Positions 3,510-20,429 of a stretch of DNA of 20,959 nucleotides are shown here, piece by piece. The notes under the pieces were generated by a model. The model ran no database searches. It was not told the origin of the DNA and worked only from the letters and a program-made list of their open reading frames with translations. Every line of letters starts with the position of its first letter. The stretch's first letter is position 1. The stretch is from positions 1 to 20,959 of the forward strand of contig NW_021824717.1 of the NCBI RefSeq assembly GCF_006345805.1, written 5' to 3'. The translations under genes and the position numbers were made by a program. The DNA is from Octopus sinensis. Taxonomy: Eukaryota.

Positions 3510-3562
<53 letters not shown>

Positions 3563-3568
3563 TTATAT

Positions 3569-3613
<45 letters not shown>

Positions 3614-3649
3614 TATATATATATATATATAGTTATATATATATATGAT

Positions 3650-4870
3650 AGAACAATTACTTTGAAGCATTGTGTAGAATATATGTACAAAATGTGGTAG
3701 CTTTATGAAGCACATAATGCTAACCATTATAGTTAGTAACACCTATTTTCTGTATAAGGGTGTGACTTACAAACAGACGTCCGGCCTACCTATATGATCT
3801 AGCCTTTCAGGCCTGCTGGCCATCATTTACATGCATAAGCTAGAACGCACAGCACTCAACACCTGCCGCACATGCATCTTCTTCTCCACATACATTGATG
3901 GCATCCTTATCATCACATTGAGACGAATCCGGAACCCTCTCTCTACTCGACTTTCAACTCAGGATCACAGAGGAGGGCTCCATATTTACCAAATTCTACA
4001 GAAAAGCCGCTAGCAGAAAACTTTTCGTCCACTACCAATCAGCCTTATCCACCAGAGCCAAACAACGCATACGTGAGAAACGAGATTGCATGTATAAACA
4101 ACAATTGCAGCAAAGTGACCTACAAAGCCGTCAACACCAAGCAGTTCATCAGAGACCTAACTCTGAATGGCTACCCAGCATCTTTAGCCAAATAACGGCG
4201 CCTAAAGAACATCAGGGTCAATAAACCGTTATACTACCAATTCCAGCACGTGCTTCCTAAAGCTACCACATTTTGAAGACAGAACTACTGCAGCGATACA
4301 ACACTCAGTCCGCAGAGGACTCGACACACAGATAGTGTACACCGGCCCTTCCCTTAGAAAAGCTCTGTCCAAGAACAACACCTCTCATTACTCCGAAGAG
4401 TGCACATTATTGAACTGCCCCATGAATGACCCTGAATTGTGCCAGAGGACCTACCTTACATACGAGGTCATCTGTGGAAAATGTGGCGCATCGGACATCG
4501 GAAGCAAGACAAGAAAACTGCATATACGCATAAAGGAACAAATGCAGGCTGACACTTCTGTGAAGAAACATCTGCGAAAGTGCCAGACCCAGGAATCCAC
4601 AGTGCACATCAGTGGAACACAGCGAAGCAGGGGCAACCTTAGAATTTCTGAGGCCATTCTCATACACCATAGGAAACCAAATATCAACAACAGAAGAGAG
4701 TTACAGGAAGCTAGCTGGTTGCTATAGCAACACCTTTCCGCGCATGTCCACTCCACACGCTCTCACACACACGCATATCGGCAACATTCGATAATTTCTT
4801 GATAATGGGGTCATAATCCCGAAGCACTACATCAATTCTTATATTTGTTTTTTGTGATTTGTCTTGCATT
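3650..4870 (+). mobile_element. Penelope-like retroelement, 5'-truncated and decayed (RT C-half + GIY-YIG endonuclease)
   Basis: NTYFLYKGVTYKQTSGLPI*SSLSGLLAIIYMHKLE...FSTYIDG is the PLE RT GLPMGS and YxDD motifs, degenerate; HYQSA and RNEIACINNNCS...LTLNGYP give the thumb region; NCP...CQRTYLTYEVICGKCGASDIGSKTRKLHIRIKEQ...ISEAILIHHRKPNIN is a GIY-YIG domain (ORF 4335-4727). In-frame stop and frameshifts. Confidence 0.88.
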
Positions 4871-4990: not shown

Positions 4991-5607
4991 CTGCGTTGAT
5001 TGCGATCACAGGTGATCTGTAGCTAAATTCTGTTTTTAAATGACTCGCTTCGAGATTGCATTCGGTACGATTTTGTTTGTATTTGTAGTTTATGACTTTA
5101 AAAGTCCCGCTCTAGCGTGCGGCATTTTTGTGTAATAATGCCCTCTATATAATATAAATAAATATTTTCAAGTAAAAAATTTACAGATTTTTTCTCTAAT
5201 GAGGTTTTTCACGCTAACTACTTGATATTTCTTATTAAGATTTTATCCTATTTTTTTTTTCCGAAGAAGCACGTTGTTACCGAAATGCAATTCGAAAAAT
5301 CCCGCCATTTACATAGATGTATGAGGGGTGAACAGTTCCATATGCTGCGATGGATGCGACGGTTGTCTGTCTGGTATGTTGATTTTGTTCATTCATGATA
5401 TATCTTGAATTCGCTGCACTGAAGGCAAGGGACGCAGATACTGCGTTGATTGCGAAATCACAGGTGATCTGTAGCTAAATTCTGTTTTTTTAAATGACTC
5501 GCTTCGAGAATTGCATTCGGTACGATTTGTTTATATTTGGTAGTTATGACTTTAAAAGTCCCTCCTAGCGTGCGGCATTTGTGTAATAATGCCCTCTATA
5601 TAATATA
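4991..5607. repeat. ~166-bp direct repeat pair (4991-5156 and 5441-5607)
   Basis: Both copies run CTGCGTTGATTGCGA..TCACAGGTGATCTGTAGCTAAATTCTG...GCGTGCGGCATTT..GTGTAATAATGCCCTCTATATAATATA. Period 450 bp; differences are mostly small indels. Confidence 0.9.
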
Positions 5608-5620
5608 TATTATATATATA

Positions 5621-5707
<87 letters not shown>

Positions 5708-5759
5708 TTACTTGGAAGGAGAAGAAAACGACGCGTGCGTTCAATCATATAATAACAAT

Positions 5760-5960
5760 TTAATAAATAAATTATGCATACATACATATATGTACATATC
5801 TACATCTATATGTATATATACATGCATAATGAGTACAGGACACCACAAATAAACGTAGAACACAACGAGAAACGAAACATAAAACCAAACAAGGAAACGG
5901 ACTATTTTTAACAACGAAAAAACAGAGTACAAGACAAACACAAGGAACATTCCCCTTCTT
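5760..5960 (-). repeat. Interspersed repeat, homologous to 18340-18500 (opposite orientation)
   Basis: Reverse complement TTGTCTTGTACTCTGTTTTT...TTCGTTTCTCGTTGTGTTCTACGT...GGTGTCCTGTACTCA aligns by eye with TTGTCCTGTAACTCTATTTT...TTCGTTTCTCATTGTGTTCGACGT...GGTGTCCTGTACTCA at 18340-18460. Family unassigned. Confidence 0.7.
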
Positions 5961-6104
5961 CAGCTGCCCCCTGTTTCGACTCAATTCGTGTTTCGAAGGT
6001 AATACATACAGATATATATATATATCTGTATGTATATGTATATGTATGTATATATATATACATATATATATAATATATATATATACAATATATATATATA
6101 ATAT

Positions 6105-6148
<44 letters not shown>

Positions 6149-6232
6149 ATATATATATATATATTATCTGTATGTATATGTGTATATATATGTATGTATC
6201 AAATGAAATAAAAAACAGAACACAAAGGATGT

Positions 6233-6324
6233 CGCGGTACACATGTTTCGAGCTTTATAACAACTTATTCTTACATCACATTATAATCGACGTAACAGAT
6301 AGTTTAAAGCCCTCTTCAGCCGCA
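6233..6324 (-). ncRNA. Type I hammerhead ribozyme, minus strand (unit A)
   Basis: Minus strand reads TGCGG-CTGAAGA-GGGCTTTA...TAAAGCTC-GAA-ACATGTGT-A-CCGCG. Stem I 5 bp (one G-U), stem II 8-bp base (one G-U), intact core, stem III self-complementary with G-U wobbles. Predicted cleavage after GUA (between 6238 and 6237). Confidence 0.85.
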
Positions 6325-6663
6325 TGCAATAGCTACATCAAAGACTTGTATCACATTATGGAAGGTCTGAGAAAGAACATTTGGTATTATTTATAATGGT
6401 AGGTAAACTGAGTATCACTGAGAAAGTATGTTTGTAAATCTTCATAATCAAATGGGTGTACAGGGTATTATTGGACTCCAAAAATCCATCCATACCGTTT
6501 TCTCACTCAATATAGAGTGAATACTGGGTAGATTCCGGTTGGGTTCATTCCTCTTGTAAGGGAAGGAATAAGGAGGATTTAATCCACATCTTTGTCTATA
6601 TATCTACCTTCTCTATAATGTTGCCACTTGATATGAAAATTTTTTGTATTAATGGAACCTCTA

Positions 6664-6755
6664 TAATTGGCTGAGGAGTGCTCAGCATTTTAAAACTGTT
6701 GTCATACTTACACATTTAATAAAATGATGTAGTACGAAACGATCGTACCAAATTA
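6664..6755 (+). ncRNA. Type I hammerhead ribozyme, plus strand (unit A)
   Basis: TAATTGG-CTGAGGA(6671-6677)-GTGCT...AGTAC-GAA-ACGATCGT(6739-6746)-A-CCAAATTA. Stem I 7 bp with one bulge; stem II 5 bp plus inner CATTTTA/TAAAATG; perfect palindromic stem III. Cleavage after A6747. Confidence 0.85.
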
Positions 6756-7591
6756 CCGGAGTCATTCTTGTTGCTTATTTTGATTATATATATATATATT
6801 ATATATATATACACATACATACATACACAACCCAACACAACATACATAGATACACCACACACATGTGCACACACAGGTACATACATACACACACATACAT
6901 ACATACAAACAGACACACGCATATGCCCTCACACACATACGCATACACATATATACACACACACATATACGCATATATATACATATACATATACATATAT
7001 ACATGTGTGTGGGTGTGTGTACACTTCCACTCGTACATACGTCCACGCATGCATACGTGTAAATCTCAAAAAGTATAAATCTTCATACCTATACCCCCGA
7101 GGATTCATTCATACACACACGCAAAAACATCACACACCTCTAAATATCTATCTTGAATTTGGGGATAACATTTTAAATTATTAGCAAGTTAATAATTAAG
7201 TGTAAGGGTAAAGTAAACGGTAAATTAGAAAAAAGTAAAAAAAATACGGTAAAATTAGAGAAAAAAAGTAAAAAAGTAAAAATAAAGATAAAAGTAAAAT
7301 CAGAAAAATCTCAGAAAAGATAGGAAAAAGATGGGAAAAAAATAAGAAAGAATAATAAGAAAAAAGAAAACTAGGAAAACATAGGAAAAAAATAGGAAAG
7401 GAAAAATTAGAGAAAAATTAGAGAAAAATCATAAGAAAAATAAGAAAGGTGAGAAAGATACATTAAATAAGAAAAATTAAGAAAAAGCACAACATCAATG
7501 TACAGAAGCAGAGATTAGAATGGAAAAGAGAATCGAGAAATGCTGGAGATAACAATGTTGTAAATGACTATGAAGATATTACAGTGGAGAA

Positions 7592-9233
7592 TTAAGGATT
7601 ATGAAATTTAAGCCTTATAATATTTGAAAGTATTAGTTAATTTATGCATAGAAGATGGTCTAAATTCAGATCTTTTATTAATTAGTTTGTTTTTATCTTT
7701 GGATTTAATGATTTTTAGGAGTTCTATGCAACATAGCTGCACCTGTTCTATTATTTTTATAAGACGCAGCTGATCCGATAATGGACCACCTAAGGCTAAA
7801 TTCGATATTATTGTCTTAAGTTCCCAAATTTTTCTTGATAATGATGTACTACTACCTTGTGTTTGAGCCTAAAGATGACCGGTGGTTATAGAATCTAGAT
7901 TTCCAGATGGATGAGCACCAATGTATGTAAGAATGTTTGCTTCAGTATTACTTCATAGGAATGAACTACATTTTTAGCTAAGAAATTTCCACTTAAAGGA
8001 CAGGCTGTTGCATCCACACAATTGCATCCGAATTACCATTTCCCGGCTGTCTGTTATTAATCTGTGGACAGATAATTTCGGTATGGTTGTTGTCAAGGTT
8101 GCTATTATGGTAGATAGAAGCTCCGCTAATATTTTCGCCATTGTTACTGCTATTATCACTATTGGTGCTATTTAAGTTGTTCCGGCCTATATTTCTTCTA
8201 CTTCTAGTACCGATATTGGATCTATCTTCTACATTTCTATTATTGCTAGTTATATTGCTATTACAATTGGTATAATTAAATTCATAATTATTATTCGATG
8301 TGGACTGAGTTATCACATTAAAAGTTGTAATAGTATTATCTTCATTAGTTATATAATTATTGGGTATAAGATTATCTCCGTTATTGTAATGGGTGTTGTT
8401 ACTAGCTGTTTCAATATTGCTATTACTATCCAGATTATTATTGTTATTATATTGGCTGTTACTATTATTAATGTGGCTATAGTCATTATCAACATTAAAT
8501 TCGCTGTTTAGGGAACTACTGTTATTTATCTCTAAGTTGTCAGCTTGGCGGTTAGGTATCGAAGTTATAGGGGTAATGCTTTGGCTATTGTTATTAGTTT
8601 GGCTACTACCAATGTTAACACCTGGACTGTTGGGGTTTGAATGATCATTATTATTTACTCTCAAAGTAGCTGTTCTAATTTTAATATTATTATGTTTAGC
8701 TATGAGACAGCTCATGTTAGGTAGAGTTGAGTATGATATCCTAATAGTTTTATTTGAAAAGATACTCCTATATTTATGAGTGGGTGGGAAGTTATTGGAA
8801 ATTATTGAAAATATTTTTTTGCATAATTTACCCTTAACCGCTATATTATATGGTATGTTATACCATATATAGTTACGTAATCTACTGTTCTTACTCCTGT
8901 GTCTTCTAATATTATCTGTGCTACACTCATCGGTAGGGTTTTCATTAACTAAATTTCTATTGGTGCGATTTCTATGTTTGTTTCCTAGTCTTGTTTGAAT
9001 TTAAATTTGAATTTGTATTAGTTGAATCTGTGTTTTTATTGCAACTATTTAGTCTAATTTCATTTAATTTCAAATTTAAATTTAAATGAATGGTTTTGGA
9101 ATCCTTAGTTCGTTTATATATGATGAAGTTTTATTGATGACGGTGTTCTAGGCGGTTCATCATATGATTTTTTGCCGAAGATATTTTCTGGGGGTATCCA
9201 AGCACTAGAGAGGGCTTGGTTATAATGATGGGC

Positions 9234-9234
<1 letters not shown>
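7592..9234 (-). pseudogene. Penelope-like element ORF remnant (RT thumb end + Asn-rich linkers + GIY-YIG), unit A
   Basis: Across frames: ..LGYPQKI.., RNYIWYNIPYNIAVKGKLCKKIFSIISNNFPPTHKYRSIFSNKTIRISYSTLPNMSCLIAKHN (WFNPP/FP..H/SYS..PN..HN PLE block), 240-aa Asn-rich ORF 7993-8715, then GCNCVDATACPLSGNFLAKNVVHSYEV. No RT catalytic core; 5' end abuts (TA)n. Confidence 0.85.
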
Positions 9235-9290
<56 letters not shown>

Positions 9291-9297
9291 TATATAA

Positions 9298-9336
<39 letters not shown>

Positions 9337-9409
9337 TTTTATCTGTATGTATATTGTATATATATATGTATTGTATCAAATGAAATAAAAAACAGAACAC
9401 AAAGGATGT

Positions 9410-9503
9410 CGCGGTACACATGTTTCGAGCTTTATAAAACAACTTATTCTTACATCACATTATAATCGACGTAACAGATAGTTTAAAGCCCTCTTCAGCC
9501 GCA
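9410..9503 (-). ncRNA. Type I hammerhead ribozyme, minus strand (unit B)
   Basis: Same core and stems as 6233-6324 (2-nt insertion next to stem II). Cleavage between 9415 and 9414. Confidence 0.85.
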
Positions 9504-9838
9504 TGCAATAGCTACATCAAAGACTTGTATCACATTATGGAAGGTCTGAGAAAGAACATTTGTATTATTTATATGGTGGTAACTGAGTATCACTGAGAAG
9601 TATGTTTGTAAATCTTCATAATCAATGGGTGTACAGGGTATTATTGGACTCCAAAAATCCATCCATACCGTTTTCTCACTCAATATAGAGTGAATACTGG
9701 GTAGATTCCGGTTGGGTTCATTCCTCTTGTAAGGGAAGAAATAAGGAGGATTTAAATCCACATCTTTGTCTATATATCTACCTTCTCTATAATGTTGCCA
9801 CTTGATATGAAAATTTTTGTATTAATGGAAAACCTCTA

Positions 9839-9931
9839 TAATTGGCTGAGGAGTGCTCAGCATTTTAAAACTGTTGTCATACTTACAACATTTAATAAAA
9901 TGATGTAGTACGAAACGATCGTACCAAATTA
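9839..9931 (+). ncRNA. Type I hammerhead ribozyme, plus strand (unit B)
   Basis: CTGAGGA 9846-9852, GAAA 9912-9915, ACGATCGT 9915-9922, cleavage after A9923. Identical stems to 6664-6755. Confidence 0.85.
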
Positions 9932-10758
9932 CCGGAGTCATTCTTGTTGCTTATTTTGATTATATATATATATATTTATATATATATACACATACATACA
10001 TACACAACACCAACACATACATAGATACACACACACATGTGCACACACGTACATACATACACACACATACATACATACAAACAGACACACGCATATGCCG
10101 CATCACACACATACGCAATACACAATATACACACACACACTACGCATATATATACATATACATATACATATATACATGTGTGTGGGTGTGTGTACACTTC
10201 CACTCGTACATACGTCCACGCATGCATACGTGTAAATCTCAAAAAGTATAAATCTTCATACCTATACGCCCGAGGATTCATTCATACACACACGCAAAAA
10301 CATCACACCTTCTAAATATCTATCTTGAATTTGGGGATGTAACATTTTAAATTAATTAGCAAGTTAATAATTAAGTGTAAGGGTAAAGTAAACGGTAAAT
10401 TAGAAAAAAGTAAAAAAAATACGGTAAAATTAGAGAAAAAAAGTAAAAAAGTAAAATAAAGATAAAAGTAAAATCAGAAAAATCTCAGAAAAGATAGGAA
10501 AAAGATGGGAAAAAAAAATAGAAAGAATAATAAGAAAAAAAGAACTAGGAAAACATAGGAACAAATAGGAAAGGAAAATTAGAGAAAAATTAGAGAAAAA
10601 TCATAAGAAAATAAGAAAGGTGAGAAGATACATTAAATAAGAAAAATTAAGAAAAAGCACAACATCAATGTACAGAAGCAGAGATTAGAATGGAAAAGAA
10701 TCGAGAAATGCTGGAGATAACAATGTTGTAAATGACTATGAAGTATTACAGTGGAGAA

Positions 10759-12396
10759 TTAAGGATTATGAAATTTAGCCTTATAATATTTGAAAGTATT
10801 AGTTAATTTATGCATAGAAGATGGTCTAAATTCAGATCTTTTATTAATTAGTTTGTTTTTATCTTTGGATTTAATGATTTTTAGGAGTTCTATGCAACAT
10901 AGCTGGCACCCTGTTCTATTATTTTTATAAGACGCAGCTGATCCGATAATGGACCACCTAAGGCTAAATTCGATATTATTGTCCTTAAGTTCCCAAATTT
11001 TTCTTGATAATGATGTACTACTAGCCTTGTGTTTGAGCCTAAAGGATGACCGGTGGTTATAGAATCTAGATTTCCAGATGGATGAGCACCCAATGTATGT
11101 AAGAATGTTTGCTTCAGTAATTACTTCATAGGAATGAACTACATTTTTAGCTAAGAAATTTCCACGAAAGGACAGGCTGTTGCATCCACACAATTGCATC
11201 CGAATTACCATTTCCCGGCTGTCTGTTATTAATCTGTGGACAGATAATTTCGGTATGGTTGTTGTCAGGTTTGCTATTATGGTAGATAGAAGCTCCGCTA
11301 ATATTTTCGCCATTGTTACTGCTATTATCACTATTGGTGCTATTTAAGTTGTTTTCGGCCTATATTTCTTCTACTTCTAGTACCGATATTGGATCTATCT
11401 TCTACATTTCTATTTTGCTAGTTATATTGCTATTACAATTGGTATAATAAAATTCATAATTATTATTCGATTGGACGAGTTTCACATTAAAATTGTAAAT
11501 AGTATTATCTTCATTAGTTATATAATTATTGGGTATAAGATTATCTCCGTTATTGTAATGGGTGTTGTTACTAGCTGTTTCAATATTGCTATTACTATCC
11601 AGATTATTATTGTTATTATATTGGCTGTTACTATTATTAATGTGGCTATAGTCATTATCAACATTAAATTCGCTGTTTAGGGAACTACTGTTATTTATCT
11701 CTAAGTTGTCAGCTTGGCGGTTAGGTACGAAGTTATAGGGGTAATGCTTTGGCTATTGTTATTAGTTTGGCTACTACCAATGTTAACACCTGGACTGTTG
11801 GGGTTTGAATGATCATTATTATTTACTCTCAAAGTAGCTGTTCTAATTTTAATATTATTATGTTTAGCTATGAGACAGCTCATGTTAGGTAGATTTGAGT
11901 ATGATTCCTCATAGTTTTATTTGAAAAGATACTCCTATATTTATGAGTGGGTGGGAAGTTATTGGAAATTATTGAAAATATTTTTTGCATAATTTACCCT
12001 TAACCGCTATATTATATGGTATGTTATACCATATATAGTTACGTAATCTACTGTTCTTACTCCTGTGTCTTCTAATATTATCGTGCTACACACTCATCGG
12101 TAGGGTTTTCATTAACTAAATTTCTATTGGTGCGATTTCTATGTTTGTTTCCTAGTCTTGTTTGAATTAAATTTGAATTTGTATTAGTTGAATCTGTGTT
12201 TTTATTGCAACTATTTAGTCTAATTTCATTAATTTCAAATTTAAATTAAATGAATGGTTTTGGAATCCTTAGTTCGTTTATATGATGAAGTTTTATTGAT
12301 GACGGATGTTCTAGGCGGTTCATCATATGATTTTTTGCCGAAAGATATTTTCTGGGGGTATCCAGCACTAGAGAGGGCTTGGTTATAATGATGGGC
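10759..12396 (-). pseudogene. Penelope-like element ORF remnant with GIY-YIG endonuclease, unit B
   Basis: AHHYNQALSSAGYPQKISF (Y..AL..SGY thumb motif) at the 5' end. ORF 10759-11331 contains KNVVHSYEV...TYIG...WKSRFYNHRSSF...STSLSRKIWELK...IRW-like SLRWSII...CQLCCIE...LINKRSE, a PLE GIY-YIG with the catalytic R, E and N positions retained. Confidence 0.88.
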
Positions 12397-12436
12397 ATAT
12401 ATATATATATATATATATATACATCTCTCTATATAC

Positions 12437-13732: not shown

Positions 13733-15407
13733 TTAATAATATCTTCTTAATTTGCTAATGTGTACATTTTGACTGAAAGGCGTGATAAATGTCAGAAACA
13801 AGCACATATCGATAAGCACCAAGAATTCCATTACGTTGGCATAACTGAATGTCATGCGATGGAATACGTTATATTGCATGCAAGAACATACGCATAAATT
13901 TAAAGTACAAGTGAAAAATAGTTTGATATTAATCATCATTGCACTGCATAATACAACAACGATCAACGGTGTCTTTAACATATATTTCTGATGTTGCATT
14001 GTTAAAGCCTATATTAGCACAAATAAAATCCCGACAGTTTGCCCAATCGCATGCTTTCTGATTGTAACCAAAAAATTTGCAAGAATATTTTGTGTCACAA
14101 ATATTATATAACCACCATCCATCGTTGAAAGTAAGGTTGGAACCTATCAGCTCGATATCTCTATATGGACAGCGTGGTTTTGGGGTCAATACGCCATTAT
14201 GACACATCACAAACTTGTTGGAGTTCTTCACGTAAGGAAATTGACATGAATACGTAATATTCGTGTTTTCTGGAACCGTGCTACCAAATGGAAGATATTG
14301 CAAAGTGTCTGAATTTCGGTAGCTATGTATGTTAGACTTGTATAACAATTGACAGTTCTTTACACACCGTGGAAGTTTTCCACTCCACGTTCCATTCTCT
14401 AAACATGTTCTTTTAGAATCTCCCAACAACGTTTCTTCAGCAGAACAGCTATATTCAATAACTGAAAAATTATGTGACAAAATATAATTTAATCCATGTA
14501 GTTTCTCAATTTTGCACGTTTTTCTGCAAAGTATGTCTGGATACCATTTACTTGAAAAGCATTGAACGACTCCAATGCGACAGGAATGAAGGATCGTTTG
14601 CACGAATATAACACTTCTCTCCTTTGATTGATTAAGGTTCTTGGTTTTAAAATTTCTACCTTCAGAAATGTCACCACACTGCCAGCAATTTCAGGTACAA
14701 CACAAAATTTCAAATGCAGACAGTGCCGGAAAGCTCCAGCTACCGCCTTGAAGACAAGTTAATACAGCTTCACCTTTCAGACTATAAGGTCTAAAGCAAC
14801 TGAAAGAAATTGTTTCGTTAACTTTAACTTCATTTGTATTGTTTACATTGCCATGTTTGGGTGGATGCGGTGGGAGACATTTAACAATTTCACAGATTGG
14901 TGGTAGAGACGACCACTGTTTATTTTCTTGACAACGTATTGAATTGTTTCCTCGCAAAATATAATCAGAAACACAGGAAAAGCGAATAACAGAGTTATAT
15001 GTGTATGATATATTGATCATGAAACTGTTTGCAGGTTTAGGAAAAATGGGGCAAGTTATTAACTTACATTTTCTATCTTCATAAATCCATTTACCATTCC
15101 AACAAATAATATCGGCTGTATTCTCTACGCTTGCTTCAAAATAGCGGTTGCACTTTTGTTGCAGGTGTATTTTTTCCTCTTCCCATTTCAAAGTATATTG
15201 AATTCGACTGTTGTTTAATTTCGGTAAAGGACCGCAGTTTAGGATTTTTATCATTTGTTCAAGAAACCACGGAGTATAGTTTTTGCAGGTTGACGTCGAA
15301 TTACTGTATTCCGACACAATCTTTTTCATAACATTTGCAACTGTATTATTTTCACTCTTCACCGTGAATAAGATAAAGAAAAGGAAATAAAATGTATTGG
15401 ATACCAT
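13733..15407 (-). CDS. Secreted/surface multi-sushi (CCP) protein, ~6 CCP modules plus possible SRCR-like domain; apparent frameshifts
   Basis: Signal-peptide-like MVSNTFYFLFFILFTVKSE; CCP modules with C..P...C....G.....C...G.W....P.C spacing (e.g. CPIFPKP...FSCVSDYILRGNNSIRCQENKQWSSLPPIC; CLPPHPPKHG...FSCFRPYSLKGEAVLTCLQGGSW; CVVPEIAG...YSCKRSFIPV.IGVVQCFSSKWYPDILC; CKIE...YSCSAEETLLGDSKRTCLENGTWSGKLPRC). ORFs 14691-15407, 14489-14713 and 13929-14603 join through single-base shifts without introns. The true 3' end (13929 vs 13733) is uncertain. Confidence 0.85.
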
Positions 15408-16754: not shown

Positions 16755-17196
16755 CTTTTCTCTTCTTACTGTTTCAGTCATTTGACTGCGGCCATGCAGA
16801 GCACCACCTTTAATCGAACACCTCGACCCCGGACACATCTTTGTTAAGCCCAGTACTCCATTCTGTCGGTCTCCTTTGCCGACCGCCAAGTAACGGGGAC
16901 ATAAACACACCAGCATCGGTTGTCAAAGCAATGCCAGGGGGACAAACCCAGACACACAAACACACACACACGCAATATATATATATATATATTATATATA
17001 TATATATATAATATATATATATATATATACATATATACGACGGGCCTCTTCAGCTTCCATCTACCAAATCCACTCACAAGGCCTTGGTCGGCCCGAGGCT
17101 ATAGTAGAAGACACGTATCCAAGGTGCCACTCAGTGGGACTGAACTCGAACCATGTGGTTGGTAACAAGCTACTTACCACACAGCCACCCTGCGCC
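16755..17196 (-). mobile_element. tRNA-derived SINE (same family as 358-778), full length
   Basis: Minus strand begins GGCGCAGGGTGGCTGTGTGGTAAGTAGCTTG...GGTTCGAGTTCAGTCCCACTG (A and B boxes), has the conserved body and internal microsatellite, and ends ...GCAGTCAAATGACTGAAACAGTAAG. Confidence 0.88.
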
Positions 17197-18323: not shown

Positions 18324-18660
18324 CTATATATACTTTGTGTTAATTGTCCTGTAACTCTATTTTTTTGCTGTTTTTAAAAAAACTCCCTTCCTTTGGTTTG
18401 TGCCTTTTTTCGTTTCTCATTGTGTTCGACGTCCTTTTGGTGTCCTGTACTCAATATATGCGTGTATATGTACATGTCGAGGTAGGTAACGTCATTATGT
18501 TTTATAATTGCATATGTTTAATTTATTTATTAATATATATATAATATATATATATAATCTATATATATAATATATTATATATATATATTATATATATATA
18601 TATATATATATGTATATAATATATAATATATATATCTATATAATATATATATATAATATA

Positions 18661-18698
<38 letters not shown>

Positions 18699-20029: not shown

Positions 20030-20192
20030 AGGGACCTAAGCACAACAACACCGGTTGTCAAGCGGTGATAGGGGTAGAGACACAAAGACGCACACACATG
20101 CACACATAAATATATATGTACGACGGGCTTCTTTCAGTTTCTGGCTATCAAATGCACTCACAAGGCTTTGGTCGGCTCGAGGCTATAATAGA
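20030..20192 (-). mobile_element. Truncated SINE copy (body only)
   Basis: ACACCGGTTGTCAAGC...ACGACGGGCTTCTTTCAGTTTC...CTCACAAGGCTTTGGTCGGCTCGAGGCTATAATAGAAGAC matches the SINE body; tRNA head absent. Confidence 0.8.
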
Positions 20193-20429
20193 AGACTTAA
20201 CTTGCAGCCACGGCTATATAAATAAATAGTTTTATTGTAGCTGTGGTTTCCTGTCTGTTGCACCATCTCATCTTCTAATTTGTAAACACTCTTTATCCCT
20301 CAAGAAGCTTACAGTACTTCCACAAATCTAACCTACCACCTTGCCGTCATTCCTTACAATACATACTTATTGTATAATACTACAACCCTTCTTTATCCCT
20401 CGCCTCCCACAACGATGCGTCATTAACAT

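Follow-up and report, generated by a model that had tools for sequence, protein, structure and literature searches.

What could have brought two different hammerhead ribozyme (HHR) motifs, of opposite polarity and facing outward, so close together in octopus DNA? The locus, at positions 6233-6755, lies in a 20,959-nucleotide stretch from Octopus sinensis (NCBI RefSeq assembly GCF_006345805.1, contig NW_021824717.1, positions 1 to 20,959 of the forward strand), and this whole stretch is referred to here as the window. An earlier note, made from the letters of the DNA alone, offered two readings: a non-autonomous, ambisense retrozyme-like element mobilised by Penelope-like elements (PLEs), or two head-to-head pLTRs from different PLE families. 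We call the motifs HHR(-) and HHR(+) after their strands; together with the sequence between them and the tails beyond them they form what we term the module, which has the following parts.

6012-6199, not stranded: (AT)n microsatellite, left flank and presumed insertion target (TRF: period 2, 98 copies)
6198-6237, minus strand, read 6237 to 6198: T-rich tail of 40 nt, 3' of the HHR(-) cleavage site, ending in TTTGAT at the microsatellite (from the sequence)
6233-6324, minus strand, read 6324 to 6233: HHR(-), a type I hammerhead motif (structural descriptor match)
6325-6663, not stranded: non-coding spacer of 339 bp, putative site of a 5'-to-5' junction between the arms (searches described below)
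6664-6755, plus strand: HHR(+), a type I hammerhead motif (structural descriptor match)
6748-6784, plus strand: T-rich tail of 37 nt, 3' of the HHR(+) cleavage site, ending in TTTGAT at (TA)n (from the sequence)
6785-7003, not stranded: (TA)n followed by an (ACAT/AC)n microsatellite, right flank (from the sequence and TRF)

Both motifs are complete and match the structural descriptor at exactly the coordinates that the earlier note had given them (CUGAAGA, GAAA and GUA on the minus strand; CUGAGGA, GAAA and GUA on the plus strand). HHR(-) reads GCGG, CUGAAGA, helix II, GAAA, CAUGUG, UA, CCGC, with GCGG/CCGC as stem I; its 8-bp helix II (GGGCUUUA:UAAAGCUC) closes a 63-nt arm, its helix III is ACAUGUGU, and with GUA in place cleavage is predicted at 6238/6237. 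HHR(+) reads UUGG, CUGAGGA, helix II, GAAA, CGAUCG, UA, CCAA, with UUGG/CCAA as stem I; here a 5-bp helix II (GUGCU:AGUAC, extendable) closes a 58-nt arm, helix III is the palindromic ACGAUCGU, and GUA again goes with a predicted cleavage site, at 6747/6748. The conserved core (C3 U4 G5 A6 N7 G8 A9; G12 A13 A14; A15.1-U16.1; H17 not G) is exact in both, and all three helices are present: an open helix I of 4-5 bp, a helix II closed by G10.1-C11.1, and a helix III of at most 2 bp with a 4-nt loop. Both helix III segments are self-complementary, ACAUGUGU through two G-U pairs, and such self-complementarity is the "works as a dimer" architecture of metazoan and PLE hammerheads (PMC4209133).

Are two such motifs expected by chance? 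The descriptor demands CUGANGA, a helix II of at least 4 bp in an arm of at most 90 nt, GAAA, helix III, UH and a helix I of at least 4 bp. Across both strands of the whole window it matched only HHR(-), HHR(+) and their duplicates (9503 to 9410 and 9842-9927), and a relaxed version in which a covariant U3-A8 was also allowed returned the same set. Dinucleotide shuffles of the window yielded no locus in 300 and, in a separate run, 11 loci in 5335, which puts the chance rate at about 0.002 per window, or 5e-8 per strand-base. At 0.002 matches per shuffled window, the probability of a second, different motif arising by chance within 500 bp of the first is about 1e-4.

The Rfam hammerhead covariance models gave no match at the gathering threshold or at E<=10, either in the whole window or in 6200-6790. 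This silence carries little weight, because in a control on related PLE loci Rfam also missed descriptor HHRs adjoining intact PLE ORFs, its sole match there scoring 25 bits against a cut-off of 52. The Rfam 15 hammerhead models fail on descriptor HHRs 3' of intact PLE ORFs at four of these loci (L001, L002, L003 and L012), and PLE-associated ribozymes are probably undercounted by Rfam-based annotation.

Folding predictions differ for the two motifs. The catalytic fold of HHR(-), at -20.1 kcal/mol, is predicted to lie within 1.1 kcal/mol of the minimum (-21.2), and that of HHR(+), at -10.0 kcal/mol, to be 10.5 kcal/mol less stable than the minimum (-20.5). In the alternative predicted for HHR(+), GCUGAG/CUCAGC and GUACGA/UCGUAC hairpins would bury both core strands (CUGAGGA and GAAA). 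We infer from these models and from the architecture of the motifs that the ribozymes at this locus are probably inert relics, because there is a single HHR per polarity, cleavage as a monomer would need a stronger helix III, and misfolding is predicted for HHR(+).

Are the two arms diverged inverted copies? Local alignment of arm against arm scored no better than shuffles and found nothing common beyond the HHR core, which rules out diverged inverted copies of one element and agrees with the earlier view that the two HHRs are not inverted copies of one pLTR. The similarity between the two tails is weak (p about 0.03). A T-rich tail and (TA)n do follow each HHR, as had been described, the tails measuring 40 and 37 nt and the right flank passing from TA to ACAT repeats; no microsatellite remnant lies between the arms. 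The spacer, earlier put at about 340 bp without a convincing ORF, is 339 bp long, and a six-frame protein search of it found no ORF with a homologue or a Pfam domain; it also gave no nuclease-profile signal. Within the module, several weak tblastn matches had suggested that the plus strand of 6262-6381, antisense to HHR(-), was the C-terminal part of a PLE nuclease. We rejected this candidate, as a profile HMM made from 266 nuclease domains scored below 0 bits in every frame.

Set against the anatomy of a PLE, each arm carries its HHR close to the 3' end with a short tail behind it (37 and 40 nt), and the module sits in (TA)n, between (AT)98 to its left and (TA)n to its right. It has no ORF, where a PLE has one encoding a reverse transcriptase (RT) as well as a GIY-YIG nuclease at the C terminus, and its inverted arms are not copies of the same element.

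The earlier note had also stated that the module recurs intact at 9410-9931. Self-BLAST showed that this recurrence is real and that it is part of one 3.2-kb tandem duplication, in which 6061-9272 corresponds to 9233-12435.

9234-9371, not stranded: (AT)n microsatellite between the duplicated units (TRF: period 2, 71 copies)
9410-9931, not stranded: second copy of the module, with HHR(-) at 9503 to 9410 and HHR(+) at 9842-9927, inside the unit 9233-12435 (self-BLAST and descriptor)

Thus, the second copy belongs to the duplication and is not independent evidence of a mobile unit. Outside the microsatellites, the alignment of the two units over 3064 columns shows 55 gap events (44 of a single base) and 30 substitutions, many of which adjoin indels; between the module copies there are a handful of indels of 1-3 bases and very few substitutions. 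Because the copies differ mainly by indels of 1-2 bases, either a very recent duplication or an assembly artefact is indicated. The first would be an unequal exchange between (TA)n tracts; the second would be a duplication that a long-read assembly created falsely or left unpolished.

We searched more widely for other copies. Exact look-ups of the module ORFs and nuclease ORFs found no others, a six-frame query of a protein database with the module returned nothing, and neither did a first word-indexed search with the nuclease ORF. A metagenome scan for a 19-mer of HHR(-) gave only five bacterial matches, which is chance level, and a scan of viral contigs for HHR(+) gave no match. Beyond the local duplicate, no further copy of the module was found in the window or in the protein, metagenome and viral collections searched. 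Since no other copy of either arm was retrieved from these collections, neither arm is tied to a parent PLE.

Each duplicated unit carries a piece of a PLE on the minus strand.

7617-8904, minus strand: remnant of a 5'-truncated PLE ORF, frameshifted copy (tblastn with the relative P0042, and translation)
10759-11331, minus strand: open GIY-YIG nuclease ORF of 190 aa in the second unit (3147 homologues in a representative protein library)

In the first copy the post-RT segment runs from 8904 to 8674 and the GIY-YIG nuclease from 8026 to 7617; weaker, frameshifted tblastn matches there span 7935 to 7617. Residues 473-553 of P0042 match 8904 to 8674, and residues 564-706 match 11190 to 10783 in the second copy. 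By tblastn and translation the RT core is absent; a post-RT segment and a nuclease without an RT core identify the remnant as a 5'-truncated PLE. An asparagine-rich, AAT-type low-complexity stretch of about 650 bp (8026-8674 on the minus strand; about 11190-11850 in the second copy) separates the post-RT segment from the GIY-YIG domain, and a relative, P0011, also has a low-complexity insert in its linker.

Most homologues of the 190-aa ORF are short, and one of them scored above the Pfam GIY-YIG cut-off. The long ones, P0042 (720 aa) and P0144 (589 aa), include an upstream RT with FYPSI and YRDDGL motifs. They also show RWK, have DKT in place of DKG, carry a CxC-X5-C linker and lack CCHH, and their catalytic E and N are surrounded by CxxC/CxH motifs. 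These are the protein features by which Craig et al. (2021, PMC8557442) characterise the "Hydra" clade, whose members are short, always HHR-bearing and nearly always found in (TA)n (PMC8557442, section 11). Matched to this published description rather than placed by phylogeny, the nuclease of the remnant appears to fit the (TA)n-targeting, HHR-bearing "Hydra" clade.

Could HHR(-) simply be the hammerhead of this remnant? It would then be the cognate 3' hammerhead of a minus-strand PLE running from 9230 to 7617, with the HHR(+) arm and the microsatellites added to its 3' UTR afterwards, by insertion or expansion. HHR(-) has the same sense as the remnant ORF, lies downstream of it and was duplicated together with it, and no other HHR core, even a degenerate one, occurs between the stop codon of the remnant and the module. 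However, HHR(-) starts about 1.27 kb past that stop, against 0-192 nt in relatives, and the HHR(+) tail that lies in between borders (TA)n at just one of its sides, so that a simple nested (TA)n insertion is not evident. In some relatives (L010 and L013) the descriptor detected no HHR. On balance, we regard this explanation as distinctly unlikely.

The window is AT-rich and rich in microsatellites, and other repeats and genes share it. A second decayed PLE, of a different type, lies at 3750-4727 (+), with a 3' region extending to about 5600. It has RT motifs (G-LPI-SSLSGLLA and YIDG), a GIY-YIG ORF at 4335-4727, (TA)n on both sides (3513-3650 and 5600-5700) and, in its region, a 175-bp direct repeat (4991-5165 and 5441-5617, 91%); no hammerhead was detectable in it or in its 3' region. 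An unclassified repeat occurs in two copies that are 77% identical (5597-5937 on the minus strand and 18344-18682 on the plus strand), each preceded by (TA)n and truncated at a different 5' point, like a (TA)n-targeting retroposon. One copy of this (TA)n-flanked repeat carries a CUGAAGA box by itself, at 5957-5963 (-), which does not belong to an HHR; neither copy resembles either arm. A 290-bp inverted repeat (1804-2093 and 2286-2575, 99% complementary) consists of two convergent LINE-type ORF2 C-termini, with the motif ...RWAGHVARL..., and a (TA)n tract between them. The window contains (TA)n-flanked retroelement fragments apart from the remnant beside the module. Copies of a SINE-like interspersed repeat at 359-771, 16778-17190 and 20080-20196 are 79-89% identical, with no tRNA-like head by ARAGORN. 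Two long ORFs at 13929-15407 (-) contain Sushi/CCP domains (Pfam E = 2e-20 and 2e-7), the upstream one with a hydrophobic N-terminus resembling a signal peptide, and are probably exons of a host gene.

The earlier note had taken it as established that PLEs carry HHRs in one polarity, and that paired sense and antisense ribozymes are the hallmark of viroid-like circular RNAs. The first premise is incorrect. Inverted pLTRs and inverted 5'-truncated copies adjoining PLEs have been described (PMC8557442), and pairs of HHRs on opposite strands, spaced 100-700 bp, had been noted for Schistosoma by 2014 (Cervera and de la Pena, PMC4209133). We also fetched the genomic loci of full-length relatives and scanned them with the same descriptor, and found outward-facing HHR pairs in four of the six loci with flanks (L001, L002, L011 and L012). 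The sense HHR follows the stop codon of the ORF by 98 nt in L001, 142 nt in L002 and 192 nt in L012; in L003/L004 an HHR overlaps the stop codon. An identical HHR lies upstream on the opposite strand in each paired locus (L001 3916 to 3873; L002 2202 to 2159; L011 36702 to 36652; L012 2117 to 2061), and L011, a 48-kb locus of the bivalve Solemya velum, shows the same kind of pair as the others. The inverted arm of L001 is 3' UTR only and abuts the start of the ORF, and those of L002 and L012 take in a truncated ORF. In these related 3' ends a tail of about 40-50 nt separates the cleavage site from (TA)n, and in three of the four paired loci (L001, L002 and L011) the tail runs into (TA)n. The module differs from these loci: the helix II arm measures 12-29 nt in relatives, against 58 and 63 nt here, and in every relative examined both arms are identical copies of one element.

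Two further observations were made at these loci. Past the point where the 3' end normally lies, and solely on the side of the inverted arm, three different PLE families share a TAGCTCT(G/A) motif on the minus strand (L001 at about 3776-3838, L002 at about 2080-2118, L011 at about 36570-36600), and the sequence that it leads may be the optional 'tail' extension described for PLEs. In L002 (+), two different hammerheads of the same orientation stand 412 bp apart (7968-8014 and 8380-8425) and adjoin three tRNA-like sequences (7145-7797); this stretch may represent an array, retrozyme-like or SINE-like, that has nothing to do with the PLE of that locus.

Given the pairs in four of six loci and the published pairs, an outward-facing arrangement of opposite-polarity HHRs with tails in (TA)n is normal PLE geometry and the footprint to be expected of PLE integration. 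Because such pairs are usual in PLEs, paired polarity is no hallmark of circular RNA here.

The unrelated arms could still belong together. The module, about 580 bp long, could be a single non-autonomous element with two different HHR termini, mobilised by a PLE RT from transcripts of either strand. Such an element would account for the perfect cores and helices of both HHRs, for their atypically long helix II and similar-length tails ending in TTTGAT, and for the lack of a microsatellite remnant between the arms, and non-autonomous elements that share only their 3' ends with PLEs are known (PMC8557442; bioRxiv 10.64898/2026.07.22.740005). Yet the sole second copy is inside a near-identical local tandem duplication, with no other in the window or the collections searched; known animal retrozymes are, unlike the module, short tandem arrays with one HHR polarity (PMC7229834); and the related PLE loci show that outward-facing pairs arise without such an element. 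We consider this explanation unlikely.

A further proposal is that the module derives from a circular RNA, viroid-like or HDV-like and about 510-580 nt long, which self-cleaves in both polarities and entered the genome as DNA by reverse transcription. It would explain why there is one HHR motif in each polarity, and, read from the sequence, a pairing of about 10 bp is possible between the plus-strand core and the antisense of the minus core. Against this, the fold of 6238-6747 is only marginally better than those of shuffles (z = -1.8 for the plus strand and -2.2 for the minus strand) and is not rod-like, its centroid structure does not agree with the minimum-energy one, misfolding is predicted for HHR(+), the module has no ORF, and its ends are PLE-type tails and (TA)n flanks. 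We give this possibility very little credence. A genuine bipartite, non-coding mobile unit of about 580 bp with two different PLE-type hammerhead termini seems to us rather unlikely, whether as an element whose strands could each be transcribed, processed and retrotransposed or as an ambisense circular RNA in its DNA stage; if it were real, it would be the first ambisense retrozyme-like element in an animal genome.

We return to PLE ends. Our preferred reading, to which we assign a probability of roughly 60%, is that the module comprises the 3'-terminal fragments of two different PLEs or PLE-dependent RNAs, 5'-truncated and joined 5'-to-5' in a long (TA)n tract. Since both ends share their 3' anatomy with related PLEs (a type I HHR whose helix III is weak and self-complementary, some 40 nt of tail, (TA)n) and lie beside the remnant of what appears to be a (TA)n-targeting element, the evidence favours head-to-head PLE ends over an ambisense retrozyme-like element. 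Thus, of the two readings in the earlier note, the pLTR or 3'-end reading with different PLE families is the one favoured. The ambisense reading has no positive support: each unit has one HHR per polarity, short tandem arrays are absent, and prediction does not give a viroid-like fold. PLE integration is the likeliest origin of the module.

How might two such ends become joined? In the mechanism that we propose, the GIY-YIG nuclease would cut the (TA)n target, and both target DNA strands would prime reverse transcription from the 3' region of RNA, generating two outward-facing 3' ends. The hammerheads would be cargo of these PLE 3' ends. Two templates from different families could have been used, either within a single event or because one insertion followed another at the same hotspot, and the same (TA)n tract system would also have received the neighbouring PLE remnant. 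The module and the adjoining remnant would later have been duplicated in tandem between (TA)n tracts, or by the assembler. With a purified PLE protein, both strands of the target are cleaved and extended and reverse transcription begins internally (PMC11167929), and an internal start explains the tail. What HHRs do is unsettled even for active PLEs: HHR mutants had no effect on PLE insertion in vitro (PMC11167929).

Because the arms are unrelated and yet both HHRs are intact, we infer that they stem from two templates and belong to two source families, and not to one old, decayed inverted repeat. The lack of a microsatellite remnant between the arms mildly favours a single event primed from both strands rather than successive insertions. 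Counting against head-to-head PLE ends is the fact that the arms are heterologous, for which we found no precedent. In addition, the shared long helix II and the TTTGAT ends would also fit two ends of one co-evolving element.

As it stands, the module is best regarded as an ordinary by-product of PLE integration, and its use lies in annotation and caution. Opposite-strand hammerheads in animal DNA should be read first as inverted PLE ends, not as viroid-like replicons, and a "second copy" a few kilobases away may be a local duplication. The helix II arms of 58-63 nt widen the known range of PLE-type hammerheads. Furthermore, if the heterologous arms reflect a single integration, the locus would offer evidence from nature for what the extension of both strands by a PLE protein in vitro suggests, namely that each of the two target strands can prime on an RNA template of its own. 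The layout is known for PLEs; only the unrelated sequence of the arms is unusual.

The module can be compared with four known systems. Circular RNAs of the Avsunviroidae and HDV-like kind (PMC7936874, PMC8781251) resemble it in having an HHR in each polarity within a few hundred nucleotides, whereas the module is chromosomal DNA with microsatellite flanks and PLE-type termini, and its predicted fold is neither rod-like nor highly branched. Animal non-LTR retrozymes (Cervera and de la Pena 2020, PMC7229834; Li et al. 2026 preprint) are, like the module, non-coding, with type I HHRs that are evolutionarily tied to PLE pLTRs. However, retrozymes are direct tandem repeats of about 170-400 bp with one HHR polarity that release circular RNAs, whereas the module has one HHR per polarity. 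The window contains no short direct tandem repeats with same-polarity HHRs, and its sole module-bearing repeat is the 3.2-kb duplication.

The closest likenesses are with PLEs themselves. The module HHRs share with the PLE 'min-HHR', or small-helix-III type I hammerhead (PMC4209133), a short helix I of 4-5 bp, an enlarged helix II and G10.1-C11.1, as well as a tiny palindromic helix III that implies dimeric action, so that by analogy low self-cleavage would be expected (PMC4209133). They differ in lacking the unpaired base between 9 and 10.1 and in their much longer helix II inserts, and whereas a strict minimal HHR has no helix III, they have one of 2 bp with a 4-nt loop (PMC4209133). Head-to-head PLE insertions and inverted pLTRs of the 'Hydra' clade (PMC8557442) differ from the module in that its arms are unrelated, each less than about 350 bp and without an ORF, and in that its helix II arms are 58-63 nt rather than 12-29 nt. 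Like the module, they have an HHR near the 3' end, a short tail and (TA)n. An upstream inverted, 5'-truncated copy gives them outward-facing HHRs on opposite strands, as in L001, L002, L011 and L012, and in the window it is a Hydra-like nuclease remnant that adjoins the module.
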